From positions 26,601 through 90,600 of the forward strand of contig RHPI01003491.1 of the NCBI GenBank assembly GCA_009103225.1: a stretch of DNA of 64,000 nt, in the 5' to 3' direction. The notes beneath the pieces were generated by a model. It did not search any database and was not told the origin of the DNA. It was given only the letters and a program-made list of their open reading frames with translations. This stretch comes from Chlorokybus atmophyticus. Taxonomy: Eukaryota > Plantae > Mesostigma and Chlorokybus algae. Shown here in pieces: positions 21,175 to 63,341 of the stretch; positions within the stretch are counted from its first letter, which is position 1, and each line of letters begins with the position of its first letter. The position numbers and the translations under genes are program-made.

Positions 21175-21227
21175 AGCATCCGTCCGTGCATGAGGCTCCT
21201 TCCTATCCCCAGCAGTAGCCTCCTCAC

Positions 21228-22307
21228 CTACTGGGGGAAGTCGTTTTCCTGCTCCACGCCATTTTGCTCCATGGTGTTGACGCGACGATCACGGCGAGGG
21301 TTGCCATCCGGTGTTGGCCTTTGCGTGCTTCGTTTGGGGCATCCGTACGCCAAATGCTCCGTCGACCCACACGCATAACACTTGCGCACACCTTTACCTC
21401 TTTCACCACGTCCGCCGTGCTTCGCCTCACTTCCATGCGTGTGTATGGCACCCACCTCCATTGGTGCAGGCCCAGAGTCAGCTCCACCTCCATTGGCAAG
21501 TGCTGAACTTGGTTCTCCTCGTCTCCATGCATGTTGAAAGCCTCCCCGGGGCTGATCACCATGCCTTTGCCTCCAGTCAGTGTTTCTTGTGGTGGACTTG
21601 AAGTACAACGCGTCGAGACGCTCCGCGAAGCGTATAGCCTCCGCGAGTGTCTTCGGGTCCTGTAGCTCCACTTCTTTACGCCCCAAAGGTTTTAAACCAC
21701 GTGTATACCTGTCCAACTGCTCCTCCTCGGTCATATTGGGTATGGACATCACCAATCGCTGAAACGCGGCCGTGTACGCCATCACCGACCCCATTTGCAC
21801 AAGGGCTGCAAGTTTGTCGCGTGCGGCCTTCACGCTCTCAACGGGAACAAATTGATGCCTGACCTCCAGTGCCAACTCTTCCATGGTGGTCAATGGTAGC
21901 GCCAACCCGTTTGCAACACGCGTACATCGATGCCTCCACCACACAAGTGCTGCACCTTCAAGCAATGTCGCTGCAACCTCCACGTGCAGATGCGTGGGCA
22001 CCTCCGTGAGCTTCAACCAAGACGATACTTGAAAAATCCATTCATCCACTGCATCTCCATCACGTTGACCCCTGAATGGCTTGGGCTTTGGCACCTTCAC
22101 ATGCACGCGCGAGCTTGATGCCATGGGAATTTGTACACGCGCCATCGCATGCTCATACGCCTCGCGTTGTGCTTGTGCCGCCGCTTGAGTGTGATGAAGC
22201 TCTTCTCTCAGTGCCAAGATGGCAGCTTGAAGCTCTTCCATGCGAGCATCCTCCATCTCCACTAACACACTACACTCCGCTTCCGAATGAAAAGTGTAAA
22301 CGCCCAC
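21228..22307 (-). CDS. gag: Gag (retrotransposon gag domain plus CCHC knuckle); probable ATG at 22256
   Basis: 359-aa ORF with PKPFRGQRDGDAVDEW, ALVWW and CYACGSTEHLAYGC. Confidence 0.93.
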   Translation of the reverse strand: MGVYTFHSEAECSVLVEMEDARMEELQAAILALREELHHTQAAAQAQREAYEHAMARVQIPMASSSRVHVKVPKPKPFRGQRDGDAVDEWIFQVSSWLKLTEVPTHLHVEVAATLLEGAALVWWRHRCTRVANGLALPLTTMEELALEVRHQFVPVESVKAARDKLAALVQMGSVMAYTAAFQRLVMSIPNMTEEEQLDRYTRGLKPLGRKEVELQDPKTLAEAIRFAERLDALYFKSTTRNTDWRQRHGDQPRGGFQHAWRRGEPSSALANGGGADSGPAPMEVGAIHTHGSEAKHGGRGERGKGVRKCYACGSTEHLAYGCPKRSTQRPTPDGNPRRDRRVNTMEQNGVEQENDFPQ

Positions 22308-23393
22308 ACACTTCCTCTCTCACCTTCGTAAACCGTGCTCCGATACCAGTTGTGACGGTGCTCGTGCCTTGTCACCTGTGAGTTGGTCCAATCCACAACC
22401 CTCTCACCAAGACACGGTATTCACACCGGAACCTTGCCCCCTCTGCCAAGCACACACGCGCGCCCCGCCACTCGCGTACGCACGCGCATGCGCTCGAAGC
22501 TACACACCGACTTGTGTAGCGCCTTGGATCGTCACACAAGCAAGCACACACCGGTGGGCACACGCTAGCAACCCCTGCTAACCACCACCAAGCTTGCACA
22601 CCAGAAACTAGGGAGCTAAAGGTTGTATTGCAAGTTGTAGAATGTCACTTTTATACCTACCAGTCTGCACATGCTACTGTCTAGACGATTCTAGCGCTAG
22701 ACGGAACTAGAAGCTAAGATATTCTTGCAGAATCTTGTAGTACACTTCTAGACCTTTCCAACGCACCAAAGATCTCCTAATTTGCTGCTCATATGGTCAA
22801 GTTATACTACTTGGCGCCAGGCCCTTCCAGAAATCTGGTCGAGCCCTTCTCGACTGGCCCTCCGTTTTCTGGCACCTTCCGGACTGGTCTTGGGGCCCCG
22901 GTCGATATCCGCGGCAGACTCATAACTCGCCGATATCCGCCACAAGTCATTAAAAACATGTACCTTACAAATAAGGCCTAAAACGGCCATGAAAATCACA
23001 GAATTTGGCCTTGACTGTTACAACCTTTATCTTTCCAATGCGAACGCACAACTCTTTGGTCATTAACGCAATGCCATTACCTCCAGAGGGTGGCCATCAG
23101 CGAGCTTCACTTCACCTCCTCGTACTAACAAAAGCCAACCGTAACGCCGTGCAATATCAATACTCATAAAGTGCTGTTGGCACCGCTATCAATCATGAGC
23201 TTACACTCTCTCCATCGACCTTGGTCATCGCAATTGTGTGCTCGAAGCCCGAAGTACTTTGTTGTCTCCTCTTTTGCATAACTTACTACCGTTGGCGCGT
23301 TCATAGCCATCTTCTCTTGCTTCCTTGATGGAAATGTCACAGCATCCGTTCGTGCATGAGGCTCCTTCCTATCCCCAACAGTAGCCTCCTCAC

Positions 23394-24467
23394 CTACTGA
23401 GGGAAGTCGTTTTCCTGCTCCACGCCATTTTGCTCCATGGTGTTGACGCGACAATCACGGCGAGGGTTGCCATCCGGTGTTGGCCTTTGCGTGCTTTGTT
23501 TGGGGCATTCGTACGCCAAATGCTCAGTCGACCCACACGCATAACACTTGCGCACACCTATACCTCTTTCACCACGTCCGCCGTGCTTCGCCTCACTTCC
23601 ATGCGTGTGTATGGCACCCACCTCCATTGGTGCAAGCCCAGAGTCAGCTCCACCTCTATTGGCAAGCGCTAAACTTGGTTCTCCTCGTCTCAATGCATGC
23701 TGAAAGCCTCCCCGGGGCTGATCACCATGCCTTTGCCTCCAGTCAGTGTTTCTTGTGGTGGACTTGAAGTATGGTGCGTCGAGACGCTCCGCGATGCGTA
23801 TAGCCTCCGCGAGTGTCTGCGGGTCCTGTAGCTCCACTTTTTTACACCCCAAAGGTTTTAAACCACGTGTATTCCTGTCCAGCTGCTCCTCCTCGGTCAT
23901 ATTGGGTATGGACATCACCAATCGCTGAAACGCAGCCGTGTACGCCATCACCGACCCCATTTGCACAAGGGCTGCAAGTTTGTCGCGTGTGGCCTTCACG
24001 CTCTCAACGGGAACAAATTGATGCCTGACCTCCAGTGCCAACTCTTCCATGGTAGTCAATGGCAGTGCCATCCCACTTGCAACACGCGTACAACGATGTC
24101 TCCACCAAACAAGTGCTGCACCCTCAAGTAATGTCGCTGCGACCTCCACGTGCAGATGCATAGGCACCTCCGGGAGCTTCAACCAAGACGATACTTGGAA
24201 AATCCATTCATCCACTGCATCTCCATCACATTGACCCTTGAATGGCTTGGGCTTTAGCACCTTCACATGCACGCGCGAGCTTGATGCCATGGGAACTTGT
24301 ACACGCGCCATCGCATGCTCATACGCCTCGCGTTGTGCTTGTGCCGCTGCTTGAGTGTGATGAAACTCTTCCCTCAATGCTAAGATGGCAGCTTGAAGCT
24401 CTTCCATGTGCGCATCCTCCACTAACACACTACACTCCGCTTTCAAATGAAAACTGTAAACGCCCAC
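23394..24467 (-). pseudogene. gag: Gag of the old chromovirus, copy 1
   Basis: Open 357-aa frame closely matching the young gag; the associated pol is broken. Confidence 0.85.
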
Positions 24468-44656: not shown

Positions 44657-47600
44657 TAAAGTGTCCAACATGCCGACGCCTTAATAAGCAATCAAACGCA
44701 TATATCTATAATAAGGATATTGCAAGATGAGTGTTCGTCGATGATCGCAACCTACAATGTTTGATATATAGATGCATCTATGCATAGCCTGTTATTTCAA
44801 TACTTTCATCTGTGTATTGGACTTTTGTACCTTGAGATCAATATGTCCTTCGAAAGGGTCGGATGCACACTTACAACTGCATGCATAAAACAGATACAAT
44901 GCACATAGTCTCAGACAATGCGTATTTCAGCGGATGCACATAGCAATTTATAAATGTAAATTTTAAAAGAATAGGTGATTAAAACACGTGTGTTAATTTG
45001 TAGTGGGAGGGTGCGGCTGCTCATGGTCACCTAACCCGGGGTGGACGAGAGGGCAGTTGTGACGGTGCTCGTGCCTTGTCACCTGTGAGTTGGTCCAATC
45101 AACAACCCTCTCACCAAGACACGGTGTTCACACCGGAACCTTGCCCCCTCTGCCAAGCACACACGCGCGCCCCGCCACTCGCGTACGCACGCGCATGCGC
45201 TCGAAGCTACACACCGGCTTGTGTAGCGCCTTGGATCGTCACACAAGCAAGCACATATCAGTGGGCACACGCGAGCAACCCCTGCTAACCACCACCAAGC
45301 TTGCACACCAGAAACTAGGGAGCCAAAGGTTGTATTGCAAATTGTAGAATGTCACTTTTATACCTACCAGTCTGCACATGCTATTGTCTAGACGGTTTTA
45401 GCGCTAGACGGAACTAGAAGCTAAGTTATTCTTGCAGACTCTTGTAGTACACTTCTAGACCTTTCCGAGGCACCAAAGATCTCCTCATTTGCTGCTCATA
45501 TGGTCAAGTTATACTACTTGGCGCCAGGCCCTTCCAGAAATCTGGTCGAGCCCTTCTCGACTGGCCCTCCGTTTTCTGGCCTTCCGGACTGGTCCTGGGG
45601 CCCCGGTCGGTATCCGCGGCAGACTCATAACTAGCCGATATCCGCCACAAGTCATGAAAAACATGATACCTCACAAATAAGGCCTAAAATGGCCATGAAA
45701 ATCACGAAATTTGGCCTTGACTGTTACACTCCTTCCCCCCTAGGTGAGCTTCATCCTCTCAAAGCTTGCGAGGTTGGCGTCGAGCAAGATAGTCACGCAC
45801 AACGTCTCGAGCATTAACCAAGTGTGCCTCTGGCTCCCAGGTTGCTTCATGCAATGGATAGCCCTTCCATTGCACTAAGAACTTGCGCATGCCATGCACA
45901 AACTTCTCACCAAAGATGTCTTCTACCTCCCACTCTGATTCACCATCCGTGCCAACTTCGGGGGGCGGTCTTTCTGGCGGTTGTCCTCAATATGCCTTCA
46001 GAAGGGAGACGTGAAAAACGGGGTGCACACGCATGGTGTCGGGTAGCTCCAGCTTGTACGCCACGTCCGAAATAATTTTGCTGACCTTAAATGGTCTCAA
46101 CCAGCGTTCATTCAGCTTGCGAACTCCCGTACGCACCTGTACATGCTTTGCGGAGAGTAACACAATGTCGCCTTTTTGAAATGTGAGGTGTCGGCGATGC
46201 GCGTCCGCGTACTGCTTCTGCCTGTTTTGTGCCACCAATAGCGCCTTCCTAGCTGCCTTATTAATGTCCGCGCACTTTCTGAGGAAGTCATAGCTGCCTC
46301 TACACGCACTTCATGTCGTCAACGGGGTTAATGGATGTTGCCCGTAGTTCATAAGGAAGGGAGTGACACCTGTGCTTGCATTGTGGTTGTTGATCGCAAA
46401 CTCCACCAACTCAAGCAGCTCCGCCAAATTGTTTTGTCGCGCATTAACGTAGCAACGCAGCATGTCCTCGATTACAGGGTTGGCCCGTTCCGTTTGCCCA
46501 TTAGTTTGCGGGTGGCATGCCGTGGTAAACTTCAGCGTGGTACCCAGTGCACTATGCAGCGCCTCCCAAAACTTACTTGTAAAGCGCGGGTCGCGATCAC
46601 TCACAATGCTTTGTGGTAATCCATGTGAACGAAACACATGCTTCACGAACAAGCGTGCTGCCTCCGGTGCCGTGCAAGACTCACCACACGGTGCCAAGCG
46701 TACCATTTTGCTGGTTTTGTCGACAAACACAAGTATAGCGTTGTACCCTTCTTTTGTCTTTGGTAGCCCCGTAATAAAGTCCATGGTAACTTGCTCCCAC
46801 TTGGACAATGGCACAGGGAGGTTGCAGCAACCCACTTGGCTTTTGGTTGCTTGCCTTCACCCTTTGGCATGCGTCGCACAACGCCACGTAGTCGCGCACA
46901 TCGCGATGCATCTCTCGCCAATAAAAAGGCTGCTTCAAGCTTGCCAAAGTCCTCTCTAACCATTGGTGATCAGCAATGGGCACGTCATGAACTTTCTGCA
47001 GCAACTTCACACGGATATGCGTGACGTTGGGGATGTACAAGCGCTCGTGGTGCCATAGCAGCCCGTCGCGCATTGACCAATGCCCACTTGTGTCCGTAGC
47101 TGCACTTTCCAGCTCTTGCAACACTTTCACACCCTCCGCGTCTTCACGCATCACTTGCCAAATCTGGTCAATCCACTCGGGCTGCACTTAAGCGAGTGCC
47201 TCAATTGCATTAAGCCGGCTCAGCGCGTCAGCAACACCAATTTATGTACCGGGCTTGTACTTGATATCAAGAAGTCAAAAAGTTGAAACAACTCCAGCCA
47301 TCATGCTTGTCTGCGACTTAGATGAGGTGTGTTTGTAAGTACCTCAGTGGAGAGTGATCCGTCTCAAGCACGAACTTTTTGCCTTCTCGAAAACAACGCC
47401 ATTGTCGTAGCGCCATTACTTGCACCGAAAGTTCCTTCTCGTGCACGGGGTAACTCAGCTCCACACCACTCATCTTCTTGCTGAAGAATGCTACTGGTTA
47501 AAGGCCAATGCCATGGTCGTGCTGCAAAACAGCTTCCACGGCTGTGTCGGACGCGTCGCAAGCTAAAATAAATGTCTTTTCCATGTCGGGGTGAGCTAGG

Positions 47601-48420
47601 ACTTGTCATGCCTATCGTCCAAGCATGCCAGTCGTCATCGGGCATGCCTACAGCGAGACCCTCGCCCGGCTTACCAGCATGGTGACCCGCGCGCGTCTCT
47701 GACCAGTAGCTAGGTCATGTCTCTAGAGTAGCTCATGACCATAGCCTACATAGGCACCGCGCGTAGCTGTTTAATTGTGAGCTCAGTTATAAGTTGGGTT
47801 CTATACCGAGTGGGGATTTCCTGTGGAAATAGCCTCGATATGACCGTTAGCTTATGTTCTGGACAGTCATGAGTTGACTTGTATAAGTAGGCACAGTGTT
47901 CACCGGATCAGCTGGTGACACTGTAAGTAAGAAAGCTAAGAGCTTGTGAAGCGATTTGAGCTACGAAACACGCCGTCCTGGTTCCCAAGAATCCCCTCAC
48001 CGTGTGAGAGCCTGTGCATGTTCTTGTGCACTGTGCTTGTCTTTGCTGTGAGTATTGGTGTACTTGGTCGCGGCGTGCTTGTTGGCATCAGTCTGGGCAT
48101 AGCATCCACGTGTTGCTTGCTCATTCACCTCACTTAACAGTGTAATTTCTCTTCCACTCATGCAAAGAACTGTGTAAACAGCACTACCTATAGTAGTGGC
48201 TTGTTGACTTACAGTGTCACCCTCTTTGCTCAAGTGAGTGTAGTTGCAGGCTGTACATCAGCATCGCAATCTGTAGTTGTACATGTCGCAGTGCAGTGTT
48301 GTCACCGTCATCGCATAGCGCGCACAAGCGCTAGTGTGTTGGGTGATAGCAACACTGGAGATCCCATTGTAGAGCACAAATACTCTACCCTTCATCCACT
48401 TTCACCATCGCATCAGCTGT

Positions 48421-50121
48421 ATGAGCAGGCCCACCCCTTTCTCGCCAATAGAAGAAGGGGACCTCAACAGCTGGAGCCCAACCTCCAACCCTACCTACGA
48501 GCGCGCAAGTGAAGGGAGCGATTTTCGTAGCAGCAGAGGCTCACGCCCCGTCTCCGGCTTCACCTCCTCTCACTCCACTCCTCAACAACGAGCATCTCCA
48601 CCACCGTCGGACAGTGACGACGAGGAGATGGAGCCTTCCATCTCAACCAACTCCCTACGCTTCTCCGGACGCCCTGGCACCACCTCACTTGACGAGTTCA
48701 TCATTAAGTTCCACTCCAAGATGCGGCAGCAAGCCCTCAAGAGCAAGGACTGGACAGATGAGGTATCGTTTCATGTGTCCGCTCAACACCTTGATCACGA
48801 AGCACATGATGTGTGGAAGTCCGTCGCTGAGTTGCACAAGATTGATGGCTATGGCGAACTGGCCAGCACAATATCCTCCACGTCACTGCATAGCCCATCG
48901 GTTACTGTCCCTGTAGCAGCGGTCCCACCAGCCTCAATCATGGGTCTCACTCTAGCTGCAACCATAGAGAAGGCAGAGAATGAAGAAGTTGAGGTGGTAG
49001 TGGCCTCATTGACTCCTGCAGAGATCGAAAGCAAGAAGGCCGAGCGCTGGATCAGGATACTCAACCGCACCGCTGCCATTATCAGGGAGCAACAAGAGGA
49101 GCAGCAAGCTGCAGCGTTGGAGATGGGTACGCCCCTGCTACCAACACCGAACTCGCGTGCTCCAGCGGGAGGCAGTGTTTTCACCCTCGGCTCAGTGGCA
49201 TTGCGTGCACCCGCGCTTACGGTGGGCGCGGCCATGTCGGACTCCCCGTTGAAGAACCTCTACGCCGCACTCCGGCGCACCTTCCCACCTCAAATCAACA
49301 GCAAGGTGGAGGAGTTGAGGCGTTTTCGACGAAAGCCCAACGAGGACCCTCTCCGACTGTATGCTTGGTTGGAAGGGTTGCTTAAAGACACTGACTACAA
49401 GATCGTCCGTGAGGAGGCGGCAGCAGTGGTGTATGTGGCCGAGTTGGATCCCACCCTGAGTGAGTCAACGCGCCTGACGCTGAACTACAGCAGGCCCCTC
49501 GGCTACACCCTCAAGGAAGCTTTCGAAACTGCACAAGCCATCCACAAGCGCGCAGTGTATGAGAAAGCGGTGCTGGACACCAACCGCAGTGCCTCGCGGC
49601 CTATGGCAGGCACAAGTGCAGAGCCTCTTCGGCGAGACCGCAGCCGAGAGCCGCAAGGCATCCACAACAAGGATAAACGGTCAGCTCATGCTGCCCTTGT
49701 GGCTCTAGTGCTGTGCCACCGGTGTGGTCGACATGGCCACTACCAAAAGGAGTGCACTAAAGATTATGGCAACCTTGTGTGCGACTACTGCCACAAGACG
49801 GGACACTTGGAGACAGAATGCTGGCTCAAGTTCCCTGAGCTGCGGCCCTCTATTGACTACAACAACGGCAACAACGCTGTTGGCTACCGCGGCAACAACA
49901 ACAACAACAACGGGGGCTACAACAACAGCAACCACGCTGGCGGCTACAACAACAGCAACAACGCTAGTGGCCACAACCCCAACAACAACAATGACGCTGG
50001 CGCTCGAAAAGCTGGCTACAGAGGGAAAAACCGCCCTCCACAGCACAAAGGACTTGAGGGACGTCCTCGCGCTGGAGCTGCTGCTGTAAAGGCACCAGCC
50101 AATCCACCAACTATTAACTAA
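48421..50121 (+). CDS. gag: Gag-like ORF with two CCHC zinc knuckles and an N/G/Y-rich tail
   Basis: 566-aa ORF with CHRCGRHGHYQKEC and CDYCHKTGHLETEC. The same frame continues past the stop (VAALMARVAQLEEKK). Confidence 0.85.
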   Translation: MSRPTPFSPIEEGDLNSWSPTSNPTYERASEGSDFRSSRGSRPVSGFTSSHSTPQQRASPPPSDSDDEEMEPSISTNSLRFSGRPGTTSLDEFIIKFHSKMRQQALKSKDWTDEVSFHVSAQHLDHEAHDVWKSVAELHKIDGYGELASTISSTSLHSPSVTVPVAAVPPASIMGLTLAATIEKAENEEVEVVVASLTPAEIESKKAERWIRILNRTAAIIREQQEEQQAAALEMGTPLLPTPNSRAPAGGSVFTLGSVALRAPALTVGAAMSDSPLKNLYAALRRTFPPQINSKVEELRRFRRKPNEDPLRLYAWLEGLLKDTDYKIVREEAAAVVYVAELDPTLSESTRLTLNYSRPLGYTLKEAFETAQAIHKRAVYEKAVLDTNRSASRPMAGTSAEPLRRDRSREPQGIHNKDKRSAHAALVALVLCHRCGRHGHYQKECTKDYGNLVCDYCHKTGHLETECWLKFPELRPSIDYNNGNNAVGYRGNNNNNNGGYNNSNHAGGYNNSNNASGHNPNNNNDAGARKAGYRGKNRPPQHKGLEGRPRAGAAAVKAPANPPTIN

Positions 50122-52500
50122 GTGGCAGCCCTGATGGCGCGCGTGGCACAGCTGGAGGAGAAAAAGGAGCAGGACTATCAAGCCTGCTATGCTGCTAGGT
50201 GGGCACTGATTGCACCAAAACGGGATAGGGACACTCCCACGCCGTCACGCGTACAACCATCAAGACGTGCGCGTAGAGAAGCTGGCGCGTCGTCAACAGC
50301 GGCATGATCGGACGCCACAAGTGGTGCTGCCTCAGCGGCCACAACTTCTGCCGGGATGACGCCGTCGACGACACCGTCGGCGTCCACACCGGCCACGACA
50401 GCATGTGTCAGCACTCGTGGCACCACGCAGTCCCCGGTGATGGCAAGCACCCACGCTGCAACAACCATGGTCGTTGGGTTTGTGGGTGGTGAATCCACCA
50501 CTCCTGCCTCCATTGAAGCGACCACATCGGCCGCAACTGCTGCCATCCTCACAGCCGCCACCTTAGTAACGAGGACTGCTGCAGGTGCCACCACCATCGT
50601 CTACAGTAGTGCTGCCACACCCACTGCACCACTTCCTGAGATTCGAACGGCACCGCCACCAGCGCTTGACGTTACACAGCAAGTGCCACGCGGACCACAA
50701 GCACAACGCGCCTGGGCGTCGGTTCCACGCAACGTGGAGCCCACCACCATTGCGTACGGACCAGGGGGGCAACGCACCACGCGCGTGGCACGCGATGATC
50801 GCATCTTGCCCCTACCACCTCCAGAGTACCACACGCTGCCGGAACCCACAACAGCAGCTGGAGGATAAAATCCTCGCCGGCACTGCGCCAGAGATGAGGG
50901 ATCGTCTTTTCGGGGTCACCTACCGGCGACCTGCAGTATTATAGCTGGCCATTCAGTTGTTCTTGGCATTACACGCACGATTGCAAGGCGCACCCAGTCA
51001 AACGCGGCAACCCATGCCCGCTCAACAGATCGACTTCGAGCCTTCGCCACTAAACCCACTCGGACTTCAGCGCCACAAAATACAAGACCTCGTGGTCACC
51101 ATGTCAGACATCGCGCTGGGCACTGATCCCGCTCTCCGGGGGCTCACTCCAGGCAGCCGACAAGAGCGTTTCTCTACCCTCGAACATGCACATCGTTATC
51201 AGATGGACCAAGCTGCCCAAGTGGACGCGCGCCGACAAGCGTACGACGCAGCACACGCCGTTATCGCACCAACCATAGCTCCGGCAGATGTTGCCAGCGC
51301 CTCCACAACGCTGACAACAGGGTACTCCACGGTAGTCGCCATCGAACAGCCAGGGCAAGCAACTGTTGCAGACCAAGCGAGGGCGTTGGCACAACAATTG
51401 AGGGGGGTAATCGCCCCGCTGCTGCCTTTTTTGGTCAAAGACATGCCCGAGGATCAACGATGCAGGGCGAGGGTACCTCACCCCGCAAGGGGACACCACA
51501 CAACGAGGAGGAGCTGGTATGGTGGGGGAGCAACAACTCCGTACCGCACTCATCCGGCAAGCAGTCATGTTGCACAGGCCTGAGGGCAACACGTTGAGAC
51601 AGATGATGGGGATGCAAGAGGGCAGCGCCGCTCGTGCCCGTCTCGTGACATGGCTCGTTGCCAGTCACCCTGCTGTCCCCCTGTTTGCCTTTGGCAACCG
51701 AGCATCATGGTTGGGGGCGTTCGTTCGTTCGCTGCGACAAGCATATGACGAGGCTGCCACCACAGCCCCGGACACGCTGGAGGGAGTGCAAGAGGCAATG
51801 CTGCGGCTGCCAGGGGTGGAAGCCGCGCGACAACGGCGGCGCATCGCCATTGCTCATGAGCTACACGCATAGCAGACTGACCTCCAGCGCACCCTACGCG
51901 CGCGCGCCATGACCGTGCTCGATGTGGGAGTGGTACAAGGAAGGTGGGATGCCTACATGGCAGGGATCTTGCGAGTCCCCACCATCACTCACGACATGCG
52001 GCGACAGCTACTACGCGCCGTATACCTGCAGCCCATGCCTCAATATTATCATTCGACCGACACGGACACCGAGCCCACGGCCACGTGGGAAGGGACGTTG
52101 ATCAGAGAAGCAGCTCATGCTGTCCGATGGACGTACGCCGCGGAGCAAGCTGAACGCGAGGCAGGCCCACAAACACCGGGGCCGCCGGGGTTTCCTCCAC
52201 AGCCATTGGGTACACCCGCGGGCATGATTCCCTCTTCGCAAAGGCGGCATCCACTTGCGCCGCCACCACAACCAGCGCCGGAACCTCCAGCACCGAGGCC
52301 CCCCCGTGTCTACCAACCACCACGCCAAGGTCGGTTCGGCAGAGGAAGAGAGCAAGGAGGGGGTTCTCCGGACCCAGCGGGCAGAGGAGCTCTGGCTGCA
52401 ATGCGCTCAGCACCCCCAGCTAAGAGAACAGAGGCAAAGGAGCAGACAGCTCGTATGAAGAGGCTGCATATCGACGCCACCGCTGCCATGGTGGCCAACC
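50122..52500 (+). pseudogene. Interrupted coding region of unknown function between Gag and protease
   Basis: ORF pieces 50122-50307, 50356-50868, 50957-51583, 51519-51872 and 51909 onward chain through in-frame stops and about two frameshifts. Confidence 0.6.
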
Positions 52501-52509
52501 AAGACAAGC

Positions 52510-52830
52510 ACGTTACCATCAACGGCCTGGCACCCAAGCGAGTAATGTTGGACATCGGAGCACAGCCTGTCATCATCGGGTGCTTCCTCGCGCGGTCTCT
52601 CGGCACAACCAGCTCCGACTTGGTGCCTTGCCCGTACGTGTTGGACACCGCCACAGGTAGCCGAGATAAGGTGATGGGAGTCACCAGGGAGGCCTTTTGC
52701 ATTTGGTTGACAGGGCTGGACCCAACCCACACAACCGAGATCGTCCAGCAATGTGTGGTCACCAATGCCGGCTCCTTCGACTTTCTGCTTGGGCAGGACT
52801 TCAACTTCCTTGTGGGCATGGGCCTCGACT
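52510..52830 (+). pseudogene. Retropepsin-like aspartic protease domain
   Basis: VTINGLAPKRVMLDIGAQPVIIG ... SFDFLLGQDF; DIG replaces D(T/S)G. Confidence 0.8.
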
Positions 52831-53279
52831 GCTGGACAGAGCGAGCGTGGATTCGGCCCCATTGGGATGAGGATGACGGGGAGGTGCAGGGTTTCCTGCC
52901 TCTCGAGTTGGTCTCGCGCACGCGCGCCCAGCGCAGAGTGGCTGCCGTGGCCACACGCAGCCACGCTCGCACACGGAAGGCTGCAACGGCCACATACGAC
53001 GGCGCTCGGACGCAAGTCGCTGCTGGTGCCACGGTCCCGTGTCGGATCGTCGACTCCTCTCCCACCCCGTACAACGAGGAGCAAGAAGATGCGATCGTGG
53101 AAGTAGCATTACAAGACCCAGCCGAACGGCGCTGGCGCGCACAAGTGGATGCGCACGTCTTGCTCAGCCATCCACTGATCACCACGCGATTCCCCAACTA
53201 CCGACGCCACGTCAAGGTGCAGGACCACCATATGGTGGCCACCGGAGTGGTGGAGTTCCACACCTTTCGCAGGCAACAG

Positions 53280-54243
53280 GGCATCACAGTGTTGGAGCTG
53301 TTTGGAGGCATTGGCAGCGGTCTTGCTGCGGTCCTCAACACAGGGGTAAAGGTTGTCAAATACTATTACTGTGACCAAGACCCACACGCGCAAACAGCCC
53401 TGAAACACCACTTACGCCAACTGCACGAAAGGTATTCACGTCAACTACCCCTCTCAGCGTTGCACGGCAGCCTCAAAGCATTGCCACAAGACATCCGGCT
53501 GATCACTGAAGATCACCTACTGTCCCTCGGCAACGTCGACCTGTGAATAGCTGGGTGGGAATGCCAAGGGCACTCCAGGGCAGGCAAGGGGCACGGCCTC
53601 GAAAACCCTCGCTGCGGGCTGTTTTGGGAGCTGATGAGAATTATCCACCTCCTTTAACACCACCAGATCTCCAGACCCCTGGGGTATGTCATCAAAAATG
53701 TGCATTCAGAGGACGACAGGCGTCCGCACGTGGCCTCCAGCTACCGACAAGTTTGCTCCATTCTGGGGCACCCACTCAAGGTGAACGCTGCACGACATGG
53801 CTCGCGCGCGCATCGTGTACGTGCCAAGTGGACAAACTTGGCCACCGTGGAAGAACTCATGACCGCAGAATACACGCGCAGCGCTCGGCCGCGCAACCTG
53901 CTGGTCGATGACATCCTTGACCCCGGCCGCACAGCACAACCTGTCCTGCGTCATGACCACCACCACTTCTACCCGTGCAATCAGCCCGGGCAGCCCCGTC
54001 GCGCACTGCCCACATTGGTGTCCTACCCGGGCTCCTATGCATTCCGGAACGGTGGTAACGGGATGGTGTTTGATGCGACCACCAACAGGTTGGAGGAACC
54101 CAACGCACGCGAACGTAAACGCGCCATGGGATTCTTCCCCAACAGCATCACGGGTTCATCGCTGACAGATAGCCAGCAATGCCAACTGCTTGGCCGCGCC
54201 ATGGACCAGAACAGCATGGTATGGCTGCTGGAGCTGAGCTTCG
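53280..54243 (+). pseudogene. C5 cytosine DNA methyltransferase domain (two in-frame stops)
   Basis: One frame: ITVLELFGGIGSG (motif I), YYYCDQD (II), QDIRLI (III), VDL*IAGWECQGHS (IV), GLFWEL (V), YVIKNV (VI), AHRVRAKWTNL (VIII), EPNARERKRAMGFFPN (IX), QLLGRAMDQNSM (X). Stops at 53544 and 53655. Confidence 0.92.
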
Positions 54244-54539
54244 CATTACAGGACCGCCACGTGTCCTTCGAGGATCTCGAACACTTGGCTGGGGGGTGGG
54301 CTGATCGCGTAGCCGACACCAAGGCAGCTCACACAGCCCTCGAGGTGGTCCACATGGAGGAGCAAGCAGCAGTGACAGTGGAGGACATTCCCGTGGTCGC
54401 CAATGCAACCTCCTGGGACCATGCCATTGGCCCGTTGGCCACAGAAGACACTCGAGAGAAGCTGGAAACTCTCCTCAACAAATGGAGGAGCCAATTCAGC
54501 TTCAATGTGAAGGAATTAGGGACGTGCTCAGTGTACCAG

Positions 54540-55830
54540 ACGGACATCGAGCTGGTGGACACTGAGCCGGTGTTCCGGCGACAATACATGCTCTCCAAGT
54601 TGGAAGAGGACCTGGTGGAACAAAGATGTAAGGCGCTGCTTGATGCAGGCTTATCGAAGAGTCCACATTGGACTTCGCAGCAGCAACTGTCATGCCACTG
54701 AAGAAGGATTCAGCAGGCAACTGGACAGAACGACGCATGTGTGGCGACTATCGCCCCCTCAACAACAAGACCAAGCAAGACAGGTACCCCATGCCCACAG
54801 CGGAGGGTATCTTTGATGATGTGGGAGACTGGACCGTCTTCAGCATCCTGGACATGCGTCAAGGGTACAACCAAATTGCCATTAAGGACGAGGACAAGCA
54901 CAAGACATCCTACTGGGGCAACCGACAGTTGTACCAATGGAAGGTAATGCCGTTCGGGCTGCAGAACGCCCCTGCCAAGTTGCAACGCGTCATGGACAAG
55001 GCCTTAAATGGGCTGGACTGCGCGCGGTGCTACATCGATGACATCCTCATCTTCAGCCGCAGCAGCGAGGAGCATCTTCAGCACATCGAAGCGGTGCTGG
55101 AACGACTCAAAGGAGTGGGGATGACCGTACACCCCGACAAGTGTACCTTCTTCACCCACAAGGTGCCATACTTAGGGCACATGATTGTGCCCCATGGTGT
55201 GTATGTGCAGCAGGCAAAAGTAGAGGCTCTGGCAGCTATCCCTGCCCCGACAGACCTCACACGTCTGCGCGCTTCCTTGGGACTTGCCAACTACTATCGC
55301 CGGTTCGTGAAGGACTTCGCGAAGATCGCCAGGCCCCTCAATGAGCTACTGAAGAAGGAGGTGGAGTTCGCATGGCTTGAGCCGCAACAGCAGGCCTTCA
55401 AGGAGCTGAAGAGCAGGCTCACCAGCGCTCCCATCCTTCAACGTCCAGACTACGCCAAGCCTTTCATCCTTCACACCGACTGGAGCAAGCTGGGGATGGG
55501 AGCGGTGCTGGTGCAGCACGATGAGAATAAGAAGGAGCGGGTGGTGTCATACGCCCGCCGAAGCAACAACAGCGCCGAGGCCAACTACAGCAGCTACGAA
55601 GGGGAGTGCCTCGCTGCAGTGTGGGCCATCTCCTTCTTCCGACCTTTCCTCTTTGGTCGACAGTTCCAACTAATCACCGATCATGAGCCCCTCAAGTGGC
55701 TGATGACCAACCAACACCTGACAGGGAAACTTGCTCGATGGGCCCTGCTGTTGCAGGAATACGACTTCGAGATCGACCACCGCGCTGGCCTCACCAACCA
55801 GGACACCGATGGCCTCAATCGCAACCCTCA
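54540..55830 (+). pseudogene. pol: Reverse transcriptase and RNase H (Ty3/Gypsy type)
   Basis: RMCGDYRPLN, LDMRQGYNQI, MPFGLQNAPA, CYIDDILIFS, FILHTDWS, YEGECLAAVWA, ITDHEPLKWL. A 1-nt frameshift near 54650 separates it from the DNMT frame. Confidence 0.95.
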
Positions 55831-56289
55831 CCTCAGCACCAACGACGCAACTGAAGCTCGGCATGAGCTCGTCCCTGCAGCAACAGCCCCCACCATGGCA
55901 GCTATGTTTGCTGCTGCCGCGTTGCGCTCAGGGCGCAAGACCAACACCACGGCCTCAGCAATAGCAGAGGAAATTCCTGCCCTTGAGCCGACAGACCCTG
56001 CTACAACCCCACCCTTGGGAGACGCCCATGCAGCCGACATTGACGTCGATAACACAGAGGCGCCCACTGACACCAGGCAGGACATATGGCAGGACCAGCC
56101 ATCACTCTCCTTTCTTCAAAGTGGCCAGCTTCCCTCCGGCATGAGCGCTCGAGAGAAGGACCGAGTCAACCAACGCACCCGTCACTATCAATGGGCAGGT
56201 GACAAGCTGTATCGCCGCTTCCACGACGAAGACAAGGAAGTGCCGACCCGGTCACGCGCGAGGGCATCATCACTTCCCTCCACACTAAG

Positions 56290-57542
56290 CTTGGACACTT
56301 CGGTGTCAAGCGTATGTTAGCCTAGTGAGGGCACAATATTGGTGGTATGGACTAACAAAACAAGTGCAGGGGTTCGTCAGCCACTGCCAACAGTGTGACA
56401 TGGTGCGCGCCAGCCTCAACACGCGTAGCGCCACCTTGCACCCACTCCCCATCTCCGGTCTCTTTTACCGATGGGGACTCGACATATTGGGGGACTTGGC
56501 ACCCTCAGCGCGTGGCAACCGGTACAACCTGGTCATGATCGAGCACTTCTCCAAATGGGTGAAGCTGGTACCATTACCTGACAAGAGCAGCAGGGGGGTG
56601 TCTCAAGCCTTCCTCTCTCACGTTCTCAGCCGATTTGGCAGCTGCGCCGAGGTCGTCACTAACCAAGGTACTGAGTTCAGAGGGGAATTCGACACCCTCT
56701 TGGACAAATGTTACATCGACCACCGCCGTACCTCGCGCGATCACCCTCAAGCCGACGGCCTCGCCGAGCGTACAGTACAGACCATCAAGAAGGCACTCCG
56801 CAAGTACGTGCTGGAGTACGAAAAGAACACTTGGGATGATCACCTCCCGTGGGTGGCCCTCGGATATCGATTGTCAAAGCAGGCGGCTCTGCGGGAGTAC
56901 AGCCCGTACTACCTGCTGTTCGGGCGACCACCATTGCTCCCCTTCCGTGCGCAGCAGGAGGTGGATCGCGTCGTGAACAACCTCGACGACCCTGACTGGA
57001 TGCACCACGACATCACCACGCACGCCGCGCTTTTCGAGCGCACCGTCCCCATGGCCTTCAACAACGTGCGTATCGCGCAGCATCGCGACACGCTGCGCTA
57101 CGAGCGCGTACGCAGCGGCTTCTACCAGGAGCGCCAACGGCGGTTCCAAGCGGGGGACTTTGCGTATCGCATGGCGGCCACCAAAGACACGCTTAACACC
57201 TCCGTAAGCCGCACCGTCTACAAGGTACTCAAAGTGTACCCCACAGGGGTGCTGGACCTCCTTGGTCAAAACGGAGAGAGGTTGAAGGACAACATGGTGA
57301 ACTGTGCGCCATGTCACCTTCCTTATGTAGCCGGCTTCGGGCGTATCCAGCACCCTCGTCCCGCGCGCAGCACACGCTGGGAACGCGGCGGCAGCGCCGA
57401 CGATGACGCACTCATGATGCTCTGCGATGGCTGCAACAAGGGCCTGCATTGCTACTGCCTGGAGCCACCTCTTGACGCAATACCTATGGAGGAGTATTGG
57501 TGCGACGATTGTCGCACCAACGGCCCTCCTCACTTGCGCTAG
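56290..57542 (+). pseudogene. DDE integrase with C-terminal PHD finger
   Basis: GHFGVKR, YWWYGL...CQQC, WGLDILG, VTNQGTEF, ADGLAERTVQTIK, then LMMLCDGCNKGLHCYCLEPPLDAIPMEEYWCDDC (about 57410-57520). Frameshift near 56255. Confidence 0.92.
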
Positions 57543-60500
57543 CAGCTGAGCTCTGGAGCTGGAACCTCCCCCAGAGCCCAGGGGGGGTGGCTTGCTGACT
57601 TTGTGTGCTACAGCACAGCATGTATACTAGGGAGAACACCGACTCCACCTGCCGGTACTACCCAGCAGCAGCAGACCAGCTGCACAGAGCACTTGTCACC
57701 ATGAGGGTTGGGTCATCTTTTGCTTTTTTTACTTTTTGCTGCACGTTGCACAGGTGGCGCAGCAGCATGTCCAGCACGGCATGGCTGTCCATGCAGCTGT
57801 CCGAGACAGCGTGACCCTCGACTCTCCTCGACCCGACAGACTGGTGCCTCCGTCAGCGCCTTCTTCAACGCAGCAAATGCATGTTTTTCTGTTGCTGACC
57901 AGCTCCAAGGCTTTCCCTTCTTGAGTAGGGCAGTCAAGGGAGCAGCTATGCGCGAAAACCCCATGATGAACTTGCGATAATACCCCGCAAGGCCTAAAAC
58001 GGACATCACCTCCTTTACGTTGGTCGGGGAAGCCCACTCGCGCACCACCTGGCCTTTGTTGAGGTACGGCTTCATGCAACACGATGCCTTCATGCAACAC
58101 GATGTGGCCTAGGTACTCCACCTCTCGAAGCAAGAACTTGCACTTTTGTAGCTGGGCGTACAACTTGTGTTCGCGCAAACGCTGCAACACGCGCCGTAGA
58201 AGTGCCACGTGCTCCTCATTTGTCTTCGCGTTCACCAAATTGTCGTTGTGGTACACGAGGACTCCCTTACCAATTAAGTCAGCAAAATGGCTGTTCGTTA
58301 GCGTTTGAAATGTTGCCGGCGCGTTTGTAAGCCCGAAGGACATAACCAACCACTCGTAGTGCCCATGACGTGTGTTAAAAGCTGTTTTCTCCACATCCTC
58401 GGGCGCGATGCGGATTTGGTGATAACGTTCAGAAAGATCAAGTGTTGTGAAGTACTGCGCACCTTGCAATTGCTCCAGCAACTCGTCAATACGTGGGAGT
58501 GGAAAGCAATTCCTTTTTGTGATGTTGTTAAGAGCTCGGTAGTCGACGCACATGCGCAAGCTCCCGTTCTTCTTTCGTACAAACAAAATAGGTGCACCAT
58601 AAGGGGACTTACTAGGCCTGATGTAGCCTCTTTTCAACAAGTCCGCCACCTGCCTCTTGGCCTCTTCCAGCTCCAAAGGTGACAGCTTGTATACGGGTCG
58701 ATACGGTGGCTTGTGCACGCCCTCAATCAGCTCCACACGGTGGTCTACGCTCCGTGGAGGTGGTAGACCAGATGGAAGTCCGTCCACCATGATATCTTAG
58801 TATTCTTTAACAAGTTTACACACCTCGGGGTCCATCGTAGCCGTCTTAACATCGTCACTCAGCTCTGGTGCTGACTTTGCAGTGTTTTCGCGCACCACGC
58901 ACAACCATGCAGCCTTTGCCTTCCGTGGAGACAATAACTTCCTCAATTGCACATAAAAGATTTGATGAATTGTCGTACCACCTTGAATGGACTCTCCACC
59001 GTTTTATTCAATGGTGAGCACGCGCTTCCTCCAATTGATGGATGGATTATGTTGCCATAGCCACAGTAGTCCCAAAATCCCGTCAAACCCGTTCCGTAGG
59101 GTGATGCAGCAAAATCGCATGTTCACCTTTATCTTTCCAATGCGAACGCACAACTCTTTGGTCATTAACGCAGCGCCATTACCTCTAGAGAGTGGCCATC
59201 AGCGAGCTTCACTTCACCTTTTCGTATTAACAAAAGCCAACCATAACGCCGCGCAATATCTCTACTCATAAAGTTGTTTGGCACCGCTATCAATCATGAG
59301 CTTACACTCTCTCCATCAACCTTGGTCATTGCAATTGTGTGCTCGAAGCCCGAAGTACTTTGTTGTCTCCTCTTTTGCATAACTTACCACCGTTGGCGCG
59401 TTCATAGCCATCTTCTCTTGCTTCCTTGATGGAAATGTCACAGCATCCGTTCGTGCATGAGGCTCCTTCCTATCCCCAACAGTAGCCTCCTCACCTACTG
59501 AGGAAAGTCGTTTTCCTGCTCCACGCCATTTTGCTCCATGGTGTTGACGCGACGATCACGGCGAGGGTTGCCATCCGGTGTTGGCCTTTGCGTGCTTTGT
59601 TTGGGGCATTCGTACGCCAATAGCTCAGTCGACCCACACGCATAACACTTGCGCACACCTATACCTCTTTCACCACGTCCGCCGTGCTTCGCCTCACTTC
59701 CATGCGTGTGTATGGCACCCACCTCCATTGGTGCAAGCCCAGAGTCAGCTCCACCTCTATTGGCAAGCGCTAAACTTGGTTCTCCTCGTCTCCATGCATG
59801 CTGAAAGCCTCCCCGGGGCTGATCACCATGCCTTTGCCTCCAGTCAGTGTTTCTTGCGGTGGACTTGAAGTACAGTGCGTCGAGACGCTCCGCGATGCGT
59901 ATAGCCTCCGCGAGTGTCTGCGGTTCCTGTAGCTCCACTTTTTTATGCCCCCAAGGTTTTAAACCACGTGTATACCTGTCCAGCTGCTCCTCCTCGGTCA
60001 TATTGGGTATGGACATCACCAATCGCTGAAACGCAGCCGTGTACGCCATCACCGACCCCATTTGCACAAGGGCTGCAAGTTTGTCACGTGCGGCCTTCAC
60101 GCTCTCAACGGGAACAAATTGATGCCTGACCTCCAGTGCCAACTCTTCCATGGTGGTCAATGGCAGTGTCATCCCACTTGCAACACGCGTACAACGATGT
60201 CTCCACCAAACAAGTGCTGCACCTTCAAGTAATGTCGCTGCGACCTCCACGTGCAGATGCGTAGGCACCTCCGGGAGCTTCAACCAAGACGATACTTGGA
60301 AAATCCATTCATCTACTGCATCTCCATCACATTGACCCTTGAATGGCTTGGGCTTTAGCACCTTCACATGCACGCGCGAGCTTGATGCCATGGGAACTTG
60401 TACACGCGCCATTGCATGCTCATACGCCTCGCGTTGTGCTTGTGCCGCCGCTTGAGTGTGATGAAGCTCTTCCCTCAATGCTAAGATGGCAGCTTGAAGC

Positions 60501-63341
60501 TCTTCCATGCGAGCATCCTCCATCTCCACTAACACACTACACTCCGCTTCCGAATGAAAAGTGTAAACGCCTACACACTTCCTCTTGCACCTTCATAAAC
60601 CGTGCTCCGATACCAGTTGTCACGGTGCTCGTGCCTTGTCACTTGTGAGTTGGTCCAATCAACAACCCTCTCACAAAGACACGGTATTCACACCGGAACC
60701 TTGCCCCCTCTGCCAAGCACACACGCGCGCCCCGCCACTCGCGTACGCACGCACATGCGTTCCAAGCTACACACCGACTTGTGTAGTGCCTTGGATCGTC
60801 ACAAGCAAGCATATACCAGTGGGCACACGCTAGCAACCCCTGCTAACCACCACCAAGCTTGCACACCAGAAACTAGGGGGAGCTAAAGGTTGTATTGCAA
60901 ATTGTAGAATGTCACTTTTATACCTACCAGTCTGCACGTGCTACTGTCTAGACGATTCTAGCGCTAGACGGAACTAGAAGCTAAGATATTTTTGCAGACT
61001 CTTGTAGTACACTTCTAGACCTTTCCGACGCACCAAAGATCTCCTCATTTGCTGCTCATATGGTCAAGTTATACTACTTGGCGCCAGGCCCTTCCAGAAA
61101 TCTGGTCGAGCCCTTCTCGACTGGCCCTCCGTTTTCTGAAGTCTTCCAGACTGGCCCTGGGCCGGTCGATATCTGCGGCAGACTCCCAACTCGCCGGTAA
61201 CGTCGCAGTCATGAAAAACATGATACCTCACAAATAAGGCCTAAATGGCCATGAAAATCACGACATTTAGCCTTGACTATTACAGCTGTGGGGAGATCCT
61301 CCGAACCTGCTTGAGCAGGCGAAACTGGGACTGGCAGTACGGGCCTGCGAGGGGGGGCTGGTTGTCGGCATTCAGTTGGAGCAGCCGGCCTGCGCGCCTG
61401 CAGCTAAGGGCACGCTTCTCTGTCGTGGCCTTCCTGTGCACAGTTGAAGCAGGTGAGAGGGGATTTCGGTGTGAGAACCGTGACAATGGTCTCGCACGCA
61501 ACGCCTAACTTCTTGTAAGTGAAGTGCGGCTTCTTGGGAAGCGTGCACCCGGGGATGGGAAGGAATAAAAACCGGCAGCCAGAGTGGAGAAGAGTGCAAC
61601 ATTTGATGACGAAAGCATGGTGCGACCAAGCTCACCATAGCTGCGCAGCGCCTCTTTAAGAAAAGGCTCAACCATCTCCGTAGCCCCAAGAAAAGAGACC
61701 CAGCCCCGCACTCAGCCCGTGCTGCGTCCCGGAGAACACGCACTGGCTGTTCGTGGAAGGATGGAAGAGAGCGTGTGTCTGCTCTTGACAGGATTTCAAA
61801 GCAAGCCGTAGGGAGAATGGAGATTACAGTGAACTCCCCGCGTAGTACATCATGGATAGAGAAGATCATGGAGCTGCCATAACCAGCCGTGCACGCAATG
61901 TAACCATGTAATCCGGACAGATGTAACCAAGGCTAGAGATGGTGTAAATGGGAAGATAAAAATTATGCAGGAAGCACGCATATGTGTATGCCACATGTCT
62001 ACGTGCGCATTTAACAGTGAGAATCTAGCCATGCTAGAAGCATCATGTAGCATAGCAGCAGCGACGGAATCAGGTGAGTTATGTATTACTGCGCAAATTA
62101 CATCTGTGCGGAGGCAGAAGAGGGGGAGGAGGATGGTGGTTCAGCTTCTGGAGGTGCAAAAGGCTTGATCGGACTGAGCGGAGGCGAGGATCGCCCTCCA
62201 TTCAGGCAGGAGCAGGCGGACGGGGGAGAGAAGAGAGATTTCCTTCCATGGGGGTAGGGGAAGGGGTGCAGAGGGAGAGGGGAGGCGAGGGACAGGTGGA
62301 GGGAGATTAGAAGACATCTAGGGCATCTACGCCCACCAAAGAAGCAGCAGGCTGCACTGCAGCTCCCTGTCCAACTGAGTGACGAATATAGCTTGGTCAA
62401 CGCCTGGTGCGACGGAAAAAGTCAAAGAAAGGACGAGGAGGGAGAGCGCAGGAGGCCTGGCATTAGCCAGTAGCCATACCCTCCTCCCCCGAGTGAAGAG
62501 ACCGCAGAGGACGCGAAGGGGGAAGAAGATCGCCGCCGCCCGCCAGCACCCAAGCCATGCAAGCATGCATACACGCACGGTGTGCTGAGTGCTCCTACTA
62601 TAAGCCTTCATGCACAAATGATCTTAATTAATTATTAAGAGACCCACCGTAATGATTGTGTATACATAACGGTAGTTTACTTGCTGAGCTAGTATTTGTT
62701 GATGACTGCGTGTGTGCAAGTATCAAGTGTCATATCCTATCATGCGCAACGCAATCGCGCAACTTCAATACAACCACATACATGTGTTCACTCGTGCTAC
62801 AAATGATTGAACATATGCATATTGTGCAGAGTTAATATATTTGCACAATACATTACACAACATGTTTGCTATGCAGCGGATATACCGATTGACTCAATCC
62901 GTATAACCGCACACATTTTGGAGACTGGTGACTGGTGACTGCACGTGATACATCGAAAGTATCATGCAAATATTCATGGCACATATGAAGAACCCAACCA
63001 TGCGCAATACTGTAAGTGTGGACTAGAGCACACTCAAGGTGCACTTGATAAAGGCTTCACTCAAGAGAGCTCATGCATGTAAGTTGTCCGTTATTAACGA
63101 GCTAATCATCGTTGATGTGAGTCACATTAACATAAAACATAACATAACATATTAGGTCAACTGGAAATATTTTATCAAATCGGTAATCTTTGCTGCATCG
63201 AAGATGACAATGCTGATAGTTAGCAGAATTGCACTGTACAATTAATGTTATAGTACAATGTCTATATGACAGTTGATACCATATCCACCCATTTTTGCAA
63301 ACGACGACGTCATTCAAGTTGCTATTCGCTATCAACGGTTG

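Follow-up and report, generated by a model that had tools for sequence, protein, structure and literature searches.

Retrotransposons that carry a cytosine DNA methyltransferase (DNMT) have been described before. The closest to the element analyzed here is KnitGypsy-Dnmt3 of Klebsormidium nitens, in which intronless DNMT3-related domains lie inside the Pol open reading frame (ORF) of Gypsy elements (de Mendoza et al. 2018, PMC5890265). Key residues were reported to be conserved in these domains, with Ka/Ks below 0.2 between copies, and the domains were placed in the DNMT3 clade on the reference tree; the Klebsormidium elements have DIRS-like repeats in an A...B-A-B layout. In yeast, the isolated K. 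nitens Gypsy DNMT domain yielded no methylation, a result regarded by the authors as inconclusive, human DNMT3B having failed too. The DIRS-Dnmt3 domains of Symbiodinium, the capture of which was regarded as independent, performed de novo CG methylation in yeast, and self-methylation of cDNA by a packaged methyltransferase (MTase) was put forward by the same authors as a hypothesis (PMC5890265). The "Gypsy-DNMT3" of streptophytes is treated as known in PMC12344493 and in bioRxiv 10.64898/2026.05.21.726589.

The present element is located in a stretch of 64,000 nucleotides of Chlorokybus atmophyticus (contig RHPI01003491.1 of assembly GCA_009103225.1), referred to as the window, with a GC content of about 51%. 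It belongs to the Gypsy-DNMT3 type published in 2018, as a further member of a kind already known. The first-pass annotation, made from the sequence alone, had pointed to the 2018 precedent for retrotransposon DNMTs, which PMC5890265 confirms, and had proposed a further or distinct lineage; its suggestion that a packaged MTase methylates the cDNA of the element corresponds to the hypothesis of the 2018 authors. Only the former applies: the element is one more member but not a new kind, since a DNMT3-like domain in a Gypsy Pol without a normal pair of long terminal repeats (LTRs) fits the published type.

Both KnitGypsy-Dnmt3 and the window element are Ty3/Gypsy-type, and the Pol ORF of each is intronless and includes a DNMT3-like domain with motifs in non-rearranged order. 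In both, the catalytic residues are conserved among family copies, the host belongs to the green lineage, and the repeat structure is other than a normal LTR pair. In contrast to KnitGypsy-Dnmt3, the window copy is a short form with two unlike ends, without the A...B-A-B layout, and its integrase carries a PHD finger, which is unmentioned in the 2018 text (PMC5890265). The likeness rests on the published description rather than on K. nitens sequences, the nearest public proteins being about 47% identical in the MTase and 54% in the reverse transcriptase (RT). SymbioDIRS-Dnmt3 of Symbiodinium likewise has a DNMT3-like domain inside a retroelement Pol, and split direct repeats are present in it; however, it uses a tyrosine recombinase and not a DDE integrase, and both its backbone and its host lineage differ from those of the window element.

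As a whole, the locus is likely to represent a decayed full-length Ty3/Gypsy-type copy in which the MTase is a module of Gag-Pol, with methylation of the cDNA or of the insertion site as the role that we infer for it. The layout gag, protease, DNMT3-like MTase, RT, RNase H, integrase and PHD finger identified the element as Ty3/Gypsy-type with high confidence. Protease, RT, RNase H and DDE integrase, the domain set of Gypsy-DNMT3, were found in order, with the DNMT inside the Pol frame. The coding parts and ends of the element are the following (window coordinates):

47604-57838, plus strand: whole retroelement, 10,235 bp, with TGTC...GACA termini, GACT duplicated on either side, and no LTR pair
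47600-47603, no strand: left copy of the target site duplication (TSD) GACT; the right copy is at 57839-57842
48421-50121, plus strand: gag-like ORF with a CCHC zinc knuckle at about 49714-49761 (Pfam zf-CCHC, E 8.9e-4); its resemblance to the gag of relatives is weak
50122-52511, plus strand: low-complexity linker from gag to protease, in three frames, broken by stops and frameshifts according to the ORF list
52512-52802, plus strand: aspartyl protease (Pfam Asp_protease_2, E 1.9e-4, residues 202-298 of ORF 51909-53546)
53271-54255, plus strand: DNMT3-like C5 cytosine methyltransferase domain, motifs I-X in order
53562-53564, plus strand: catalytic Cys codon of motif IV (GWECQ), aligned to the PC cysteine of DNMT3A
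54668-56320, plus strand: ORF with RT (about 54728-55186; Pfam RVT_1, 5.6e-30) and RNase H (about 55373-55762; RT_RNaseH, 1.7e-36)
56325-57542, plus strand: integrase ORF (rve at about 56469-56744, 8.3e-6; Integrase_H2C2, 2.6e-5), in a frame other than that of the RT ORF
57396-57512, plus strand: PHD finger at the integrase C-terminus (Pfam PHD, 1.8e-8)

No Pfam domains were found in the linker (50122-52511). It comprises about 900 codons, is rich in Asn, Thr, Ala and Pro, and far exceeds the corresponding part of relatives (about 250 aa in the intact relative P0005). A 27-nt coding tandem repeat was observed at 49857-49991, inside the gag ORF and just 5' of the linker. The protease and the corresponding region of relatives were 42-46% identical. 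The integrase PHD finger is common to most relatives, whichever of the two Pol architectures described below they have.

Translation of 53280-54701 in the frame of 53280 gave, in one frame and in canonical order, LELFGGIG (motif I), GWECQG (IV), VIKNV (VI), HRVRAKWTNL (VIII), ERKRAMGF (IX) and LLGRAMD (X). All six strings had been quoted in the first-pass annotation and were found at the coordinates given there. When aligned with the family consensus and with DNMT3A, motifs I, IV, VI, VIII, IX and X also followed the canonical order of C5 MTases. The earlier statement that the MTase shares its frame with the protease and is out of frame with the RT was likewise correct: ORF 51909-53546 is in the MTase frame, and the RT ORF 54668-56320 has been put into another frame by the loss of a single base at 54649/54650 in this copy.

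A family profile was built from 26 intact relatives (alignment A1) and compared with all PDB sequences. The strongest match was DNMT3A (E 4.5e-23), followed by DNMT3B/C (about 1e-21), plant DRM (1.3e-12), M.HhaI (1.6e-9) and DNMT2 (4.7e-6); DNMT1 did not appear among the PDB profile matches at E ≤ 0.01. In the profile alignment, the family strings "aGWeCqdlS" (motif IV), "llENv" (motif VI), "sraHRlRnyWtNL" (motif VIII) and "llGramDan" (motif X) stood opposite "GGSPCNDLS", "LFENV", "SAAHRARYFWGNL" and "LLGRSWSVPV" of DNMT3A, respectively.

The AlphaFold model of the P0005 domain reached a pLDDT of 94.9 and a pTM of 0.92. In Foldseek, the top 50 PDB matches of this model were all DNMT3B, DNMT3A or DNMT3C, with E values of about 1e-18 and TM scores of 0.70-0.73 by query and 0.80-0.85 by target. 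The motif order of the family MTase is non-rearranged, unlike that of DRM. Judged by the ranking of profile matches, motif signatures and predicted fold, the domain is DNMT3-like.

Mammalian DNMT3A and DNMT3B, the best match of the family domain in both profile and fold, share with it AHRxRxxWxNL in motif VIII, LLGR in motif X and the non-rearranged order. In contrast to these enzymes, to which it is only about 21% identical, the family domain lacks PWWP and ADD domains, has a motif VIII-IX interval about 45 residues longer, often shows Glu-Cys instead of Pro-Cys in motif IV, and sits within a retroelement polyprotein.

Conservation was assessed over 152 distinct full-length family domains. 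The catalytic Cys and the ENV Glu were each found in 152/152, the two Arg residues of the motif VIII RxR in 152/152 and 151/152, and the Gly and Asp of motif X in 152/152 each. These domains are only about 35-47% identical, and the Cys, the ENV Glu, the RxR (with the single exception just given) and the glycines of motif I are invariant among them. The alignment shows the catalytic residues to be under purifying selection across a very diverse family, and, given their invariance, the MTase of working family members is most likely active in DNA cytosine-5 methylation, with S-adenosylmethionine as the methyl donor.

The residue preceding the catalytic Cys (window 53559-53564) was more variable, with Glu in 100 of the 152 domains and Pro in 44; the window copy has Glu, and at least 11 changes were counted on the DNMT tree. 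Other C5 MTases carry Pro-Cys almost universally, and a Glu at this position might alter or abolish activity on DNA. This variation between Pro and Glu next to the catalytic Cys provides a concrete variable for probing the putative activity of Gypsy-borne DNMT3 domains.

Among the alternatives, the one that survives best is that the domain is kept for something other than DNA methylation, either as a DNMT3L-like module for DNA or chromatin binding or for oligomerisation, or as an enzyme for another substrate (RNA, an RNA:DNA hybrid or single-stranded cDNA). The prevalence of Glu-Cys over Pro-Cys and its repeated change on the tree are in line with such a role, as is the K. nitens Gypsy DNMT domain that gave no methylation in yeast (PMC5890265). 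Against it stand the catalytic Cys, ENV Glu, RxR and motif I glycines, invariant across 152 sequences of such divergence, and the match to the tRNA enzyme DNMT2, which was 17 orders of magnitude weaker than that to DNMT3A. Dead paralogues of the DNMT3L kind lose their catalytic residues. A non-methylation role was considered unlikely.

Under the preferred reading of an active DNA methyltransferase, the MTase of working family members would be translated within the Gag-Pol polyprotein and would travel with the replication and integration machinery. It would methylate the element's own new cDNA or the insertion site, and this methylation would set the epigenetic state of the element, and the PHD finger of the integrase, by recognizing histone tails, would select the integration site. 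This role, from synthesis with Gag-Pol to PHD-guided integration, is offered tentatively, as the likeliest one; particle packaging, sites of cleavage by the protease and the target of methylation are likewise presumed. The window copy itself is incapable of these steps, having integrated cleanly into another Gypsy element and decayed afterwards. A transposon equipped with its own writer of DNA methylation and with a histone reader in its integrase would invert the customary view in which methylation is a weapon of the host against transposons.

The distribution of the domain among other copies was determined in public sequencing runs, with contigs matched to 53100-54800 at ≥80% likeness. Contigs of three runs from two independent studies covered all 30 bins of this region, and one run alone contributed 203 contig pieces, including 22 with a likeness of at least 99%. 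The other copies, wherever they covered the sites, differed from the window at 53545 and 53655, which belong to stop codons, and at 53694, in the Lys codon of motif VI; contigs from three runs also contained one extra base behind 54649. Contig joints skipping the MTase were not found among the public-run contigs over 53100-54800. These differences at the stops, the Lys codon and the frameshift site mark the breaks as private to the window copy or to its closest relatives; the MTase domain itself is a family trait.

Relatives with an uninterrupted Pol pointed in the same direction. Pfam assigned CCHC, protease, DNA_methylase, RVT_1, RNase H and integrase to a single ORF in P0005, and protease, DNMT, RT, RNase H and integrase (PR-DNMT-RT-RH-INT) to a single ORF in P0187 and P0183, P0187 also being terminated by a PHD finger and having the same layout as the window element. 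The view taken in the first-pass annotation, that the MTase is integral to Pol and not a passenger, was borne out by the shared protease frame, by these three single-ORF relatives and by the public-run copies without the breaks. Family copies lacking the domain, which it had named as the observation that would overturn this view, were not seen in a region covered by many diverged copies.

A one-off passenger, in the sense of a host or viral gene fragment inserted in a single copy, is accordingly very improbable; nothing favors it beyond the broken state of the window copy. The identity of the MTase and protease frames speaks against it, and it was ruled out by the single-ORF relatives with the same domain at the same place, by the many diverged public-run copies that cover the region without a joint skipping the MTase, and by the existence of a PR-DNMT-RT clade.

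Similarity searches with the window domain were affected by its interruptions. The Pfam model PF00145, proposed earlier as a check, was matched only by the 36-aa piece that lies between the stops and contains motif IV (24.9 bits against a cut-off of 22, E 1.6e-5), so that the expectation held for this piece; the N-terminal piece (53280-53543) and the C-terminal piece (53658-54243) gave no match on their own even at E 10. As these two pieces are too short or too divergent for PF00145, the family alignment was relied on instead. The intact relative P0005 passes PF00145 at 46.1 bits.

An exhaustive phmmer search with the C-terminal piece 53658-54698 against a library of 1.84 billion representative proteins returned 753 cluster representatives at E ≤ 1e-3, of which 72 reached E ≤ 1e-30 and the best 5e-54. 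Many of the matches were Gypsy polyproteins of about 2,000 aa in which the MTase match lay mid-protein. When the whole domain was read through, with X at both stop codons, it was colinear over 320-340 residues with 100 proteins at 210-273 bits. By these scores, the MTase resemblance is far above chance. Motif matches arising by chance or as an artefact of a GC-rich frame, in favor of which only the restriction of the Pfam match to a 36-aa piece could be cited, were ruled out by the phmmer value of 5e-54 in a library of 1.8 billion proteins and by the 273-bit colinear alignment across the full domain, and their probability is negligible.

In a protein-atlas look-up, the annotation returned was "DNA methylase, Streptophyta/viruses". 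Exact look-up of two window ORFs among public gene calls gave no match, and the stretch was absent from every RNA run among the public runs.

Protein searches of public data returned nothing near-identical; no match bore a Klebsormidium name or exceeded 56% identity. The nearest public proteins showed 47% identity in the MTase, 49-54% in the RT and 48% in the integrase. Named relatives came from Closterium spp., Scenedesmus sp. PABB004, Monoraphidium neglectum, Haematococcus lacustris, Hariotina reticulata and Spirogloea-type records, and many further ones from metagenome contigs.

Two arrangements of Pol were distinguished among the relatives with a readable order: RT-RH-DNMT-INT (n = 127; for example, P0004, P0014 and P0038) and PR-DNMT-RT (n = 41; for example, P0005 and P0187). 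The chlorophyte and Zygnematophyceae relatives share with the window element the MTase clade and a Gypsy backbone with integrase-PHD; however, in most of them the MTase lies between RNase H and integrase, whereas in the window it lies between protease and RT. On the DNMT trees, the placement within Pol needs only two changes, and one split, with an SH-aLRT support of 100%, unites 25 of the 26 protease-side sequences, including that of the window.

In one protease-side subclade, represented by two unrelated contigs, gag-PR-DNMT is followed by a single in-frame stop and then by RT-RH-INT-PHD in the same frame:

L002, 1055-8542: stop-bearing contig, gag-PR-DNMT of about 1,330-1,450 aa
L005, 1022-8170: stop-bearing contig, gag-PR-DNMT of the same size range

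Going by this arrangement, the DNMT of the subclade would be produced together with Gag-PR, and RT-IN would require readthrough. Approximately a dozen sequence clusters of comparable length (about 1,330-1,450 aa) have the same appearance, and the six that were checked end about 95 residues past the MTase. Contig L001 (1-18357; ENA ERZ25067493, ctg159469_5x_c) consists of 2.2 perfect head-to-tail PR-DNMT-RT-RH-INT-PHD copies with a period of 8,262 bp. Its suffix "_c", compared with "_l" on L004 of the same assembly, suggests a circle called by the assembler, and the contig may represent an extrachromosomal circle or a tandem array.

The public data reached via the window copy suggest a group far broader and more varied in architecture than the single 2018 description. 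Its breadth would amount to at least 753 clusters, formed at 50% sequence identity, from chlorophytes and streptophyte algae, and the window family is at most 47% identical to any public protein in the MTase. A joint reading of these data, speculative and somewhat doubtful as a whole, would make Gypsy-DNMT3 an old and very diverse lineage found across the green lineage, not a Klebsormidium curiosity. Its module would have moved once or twice inside Pol and Pro-Cys would have changed repeatedly to Glu-Cys, with the window element as an undescribed protease-side branch in which the substrate or chemistry of the enzyme has perhaps changed.

The state of the window copy itself was evident from the following positions:

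53544-53546, plus strand: first in-frame stop, just 5' of motif IV
53655-53657, plus strand: second in-frame stop, between motifs IV and VI
53694-53696, plus strand: Lys codon in motif VI at the position of the family ENV Glu, which is Glu in 152/152 relatives
54649-54650, plus strand: loss of one base that puts the RT out of the DNMT frame, identified by frame comparison with L002, within the RT N-terminal "LLDAGL-I/V-E" stretch

Further frame changes were found between gag, PR, RT and INT. Of the 29 domain columns that are at least 95% conserved, five were mismatched in the window copy (E>K, D>N, E>K, T>I and R>Q); other sequences have at most 3 such mismatches (median 0). The catalytic Cys is retained, Lys stands in place of the ENV Glu, and two stops interrupt the ORF. 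The copy is a pseudogene of a C5-MTase-bearing family; it had been called dead in the first-pass annotation, in agreement with the two stops, the several frameshifts and the five changes at near-invariant residues, the ENV glutamate included.

All five substitutions of near-invariant residues (53271-54255) are G>A or C>T in the DNA. Window-specific transitions fell on sites that are CpG in other copies in 6 of the 17 listed cases, too few to call methylation-driven decay, which is possible for this copy. The dead copy alone adds little, its kind being published; it is one more data point for a multi-copy family in the genome.

Concerning the ends of the element, a repeat search of the window revealed no direct repeats of at least 18 nt joining both ends of 47604-57838, and within 47000-58500 only the 27-nt coding tandem repeat turned up in the search for LTRs or split repeats. 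The long terminal direct repeat pair of canonical LTR retrotransposons (Ty3/Gypsy, Metaviridae) is absent; TG...CA termini and a 4-bp TSD are present. The missing LTR pair would agree with the DIRS-like repeats noted for the Klebsormidium Gypsy-DNMT3 (PMC5890265). The short form of the window copy also has no internal B-A-B block.

The surrounding sequence belongs to another Gypsy element, the parts of which are:

45054-45578 and 60614-61138: LTRs of the host Gypsy element, 95-97% alike
59495-60535, minus strand: gag of the host element
57843-58790, minus strand: RT of the host element
46311-47187, minus strand: integrase of the host element

In-silico excision of 47604-57838 brought the RT and RNase H of the host element into one open minus-strand frame. 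Because excision restores this frame and a 4-bp TSD is present, the DNMT element is nested in the other Gypsy element by a clean integrase-type insertion. The host Gypsy element was inserted first and the DNMT element later.

A separate chromovirus-type Gypsy element was observed at 17641-24467 on the minus strand. It has an intact Pol of 1,176 aa with RT, RNase H, integrase, SH3 and chromodomain, as well as two upstream gag-like ORFs at 21228-22304 and 23394-24464.
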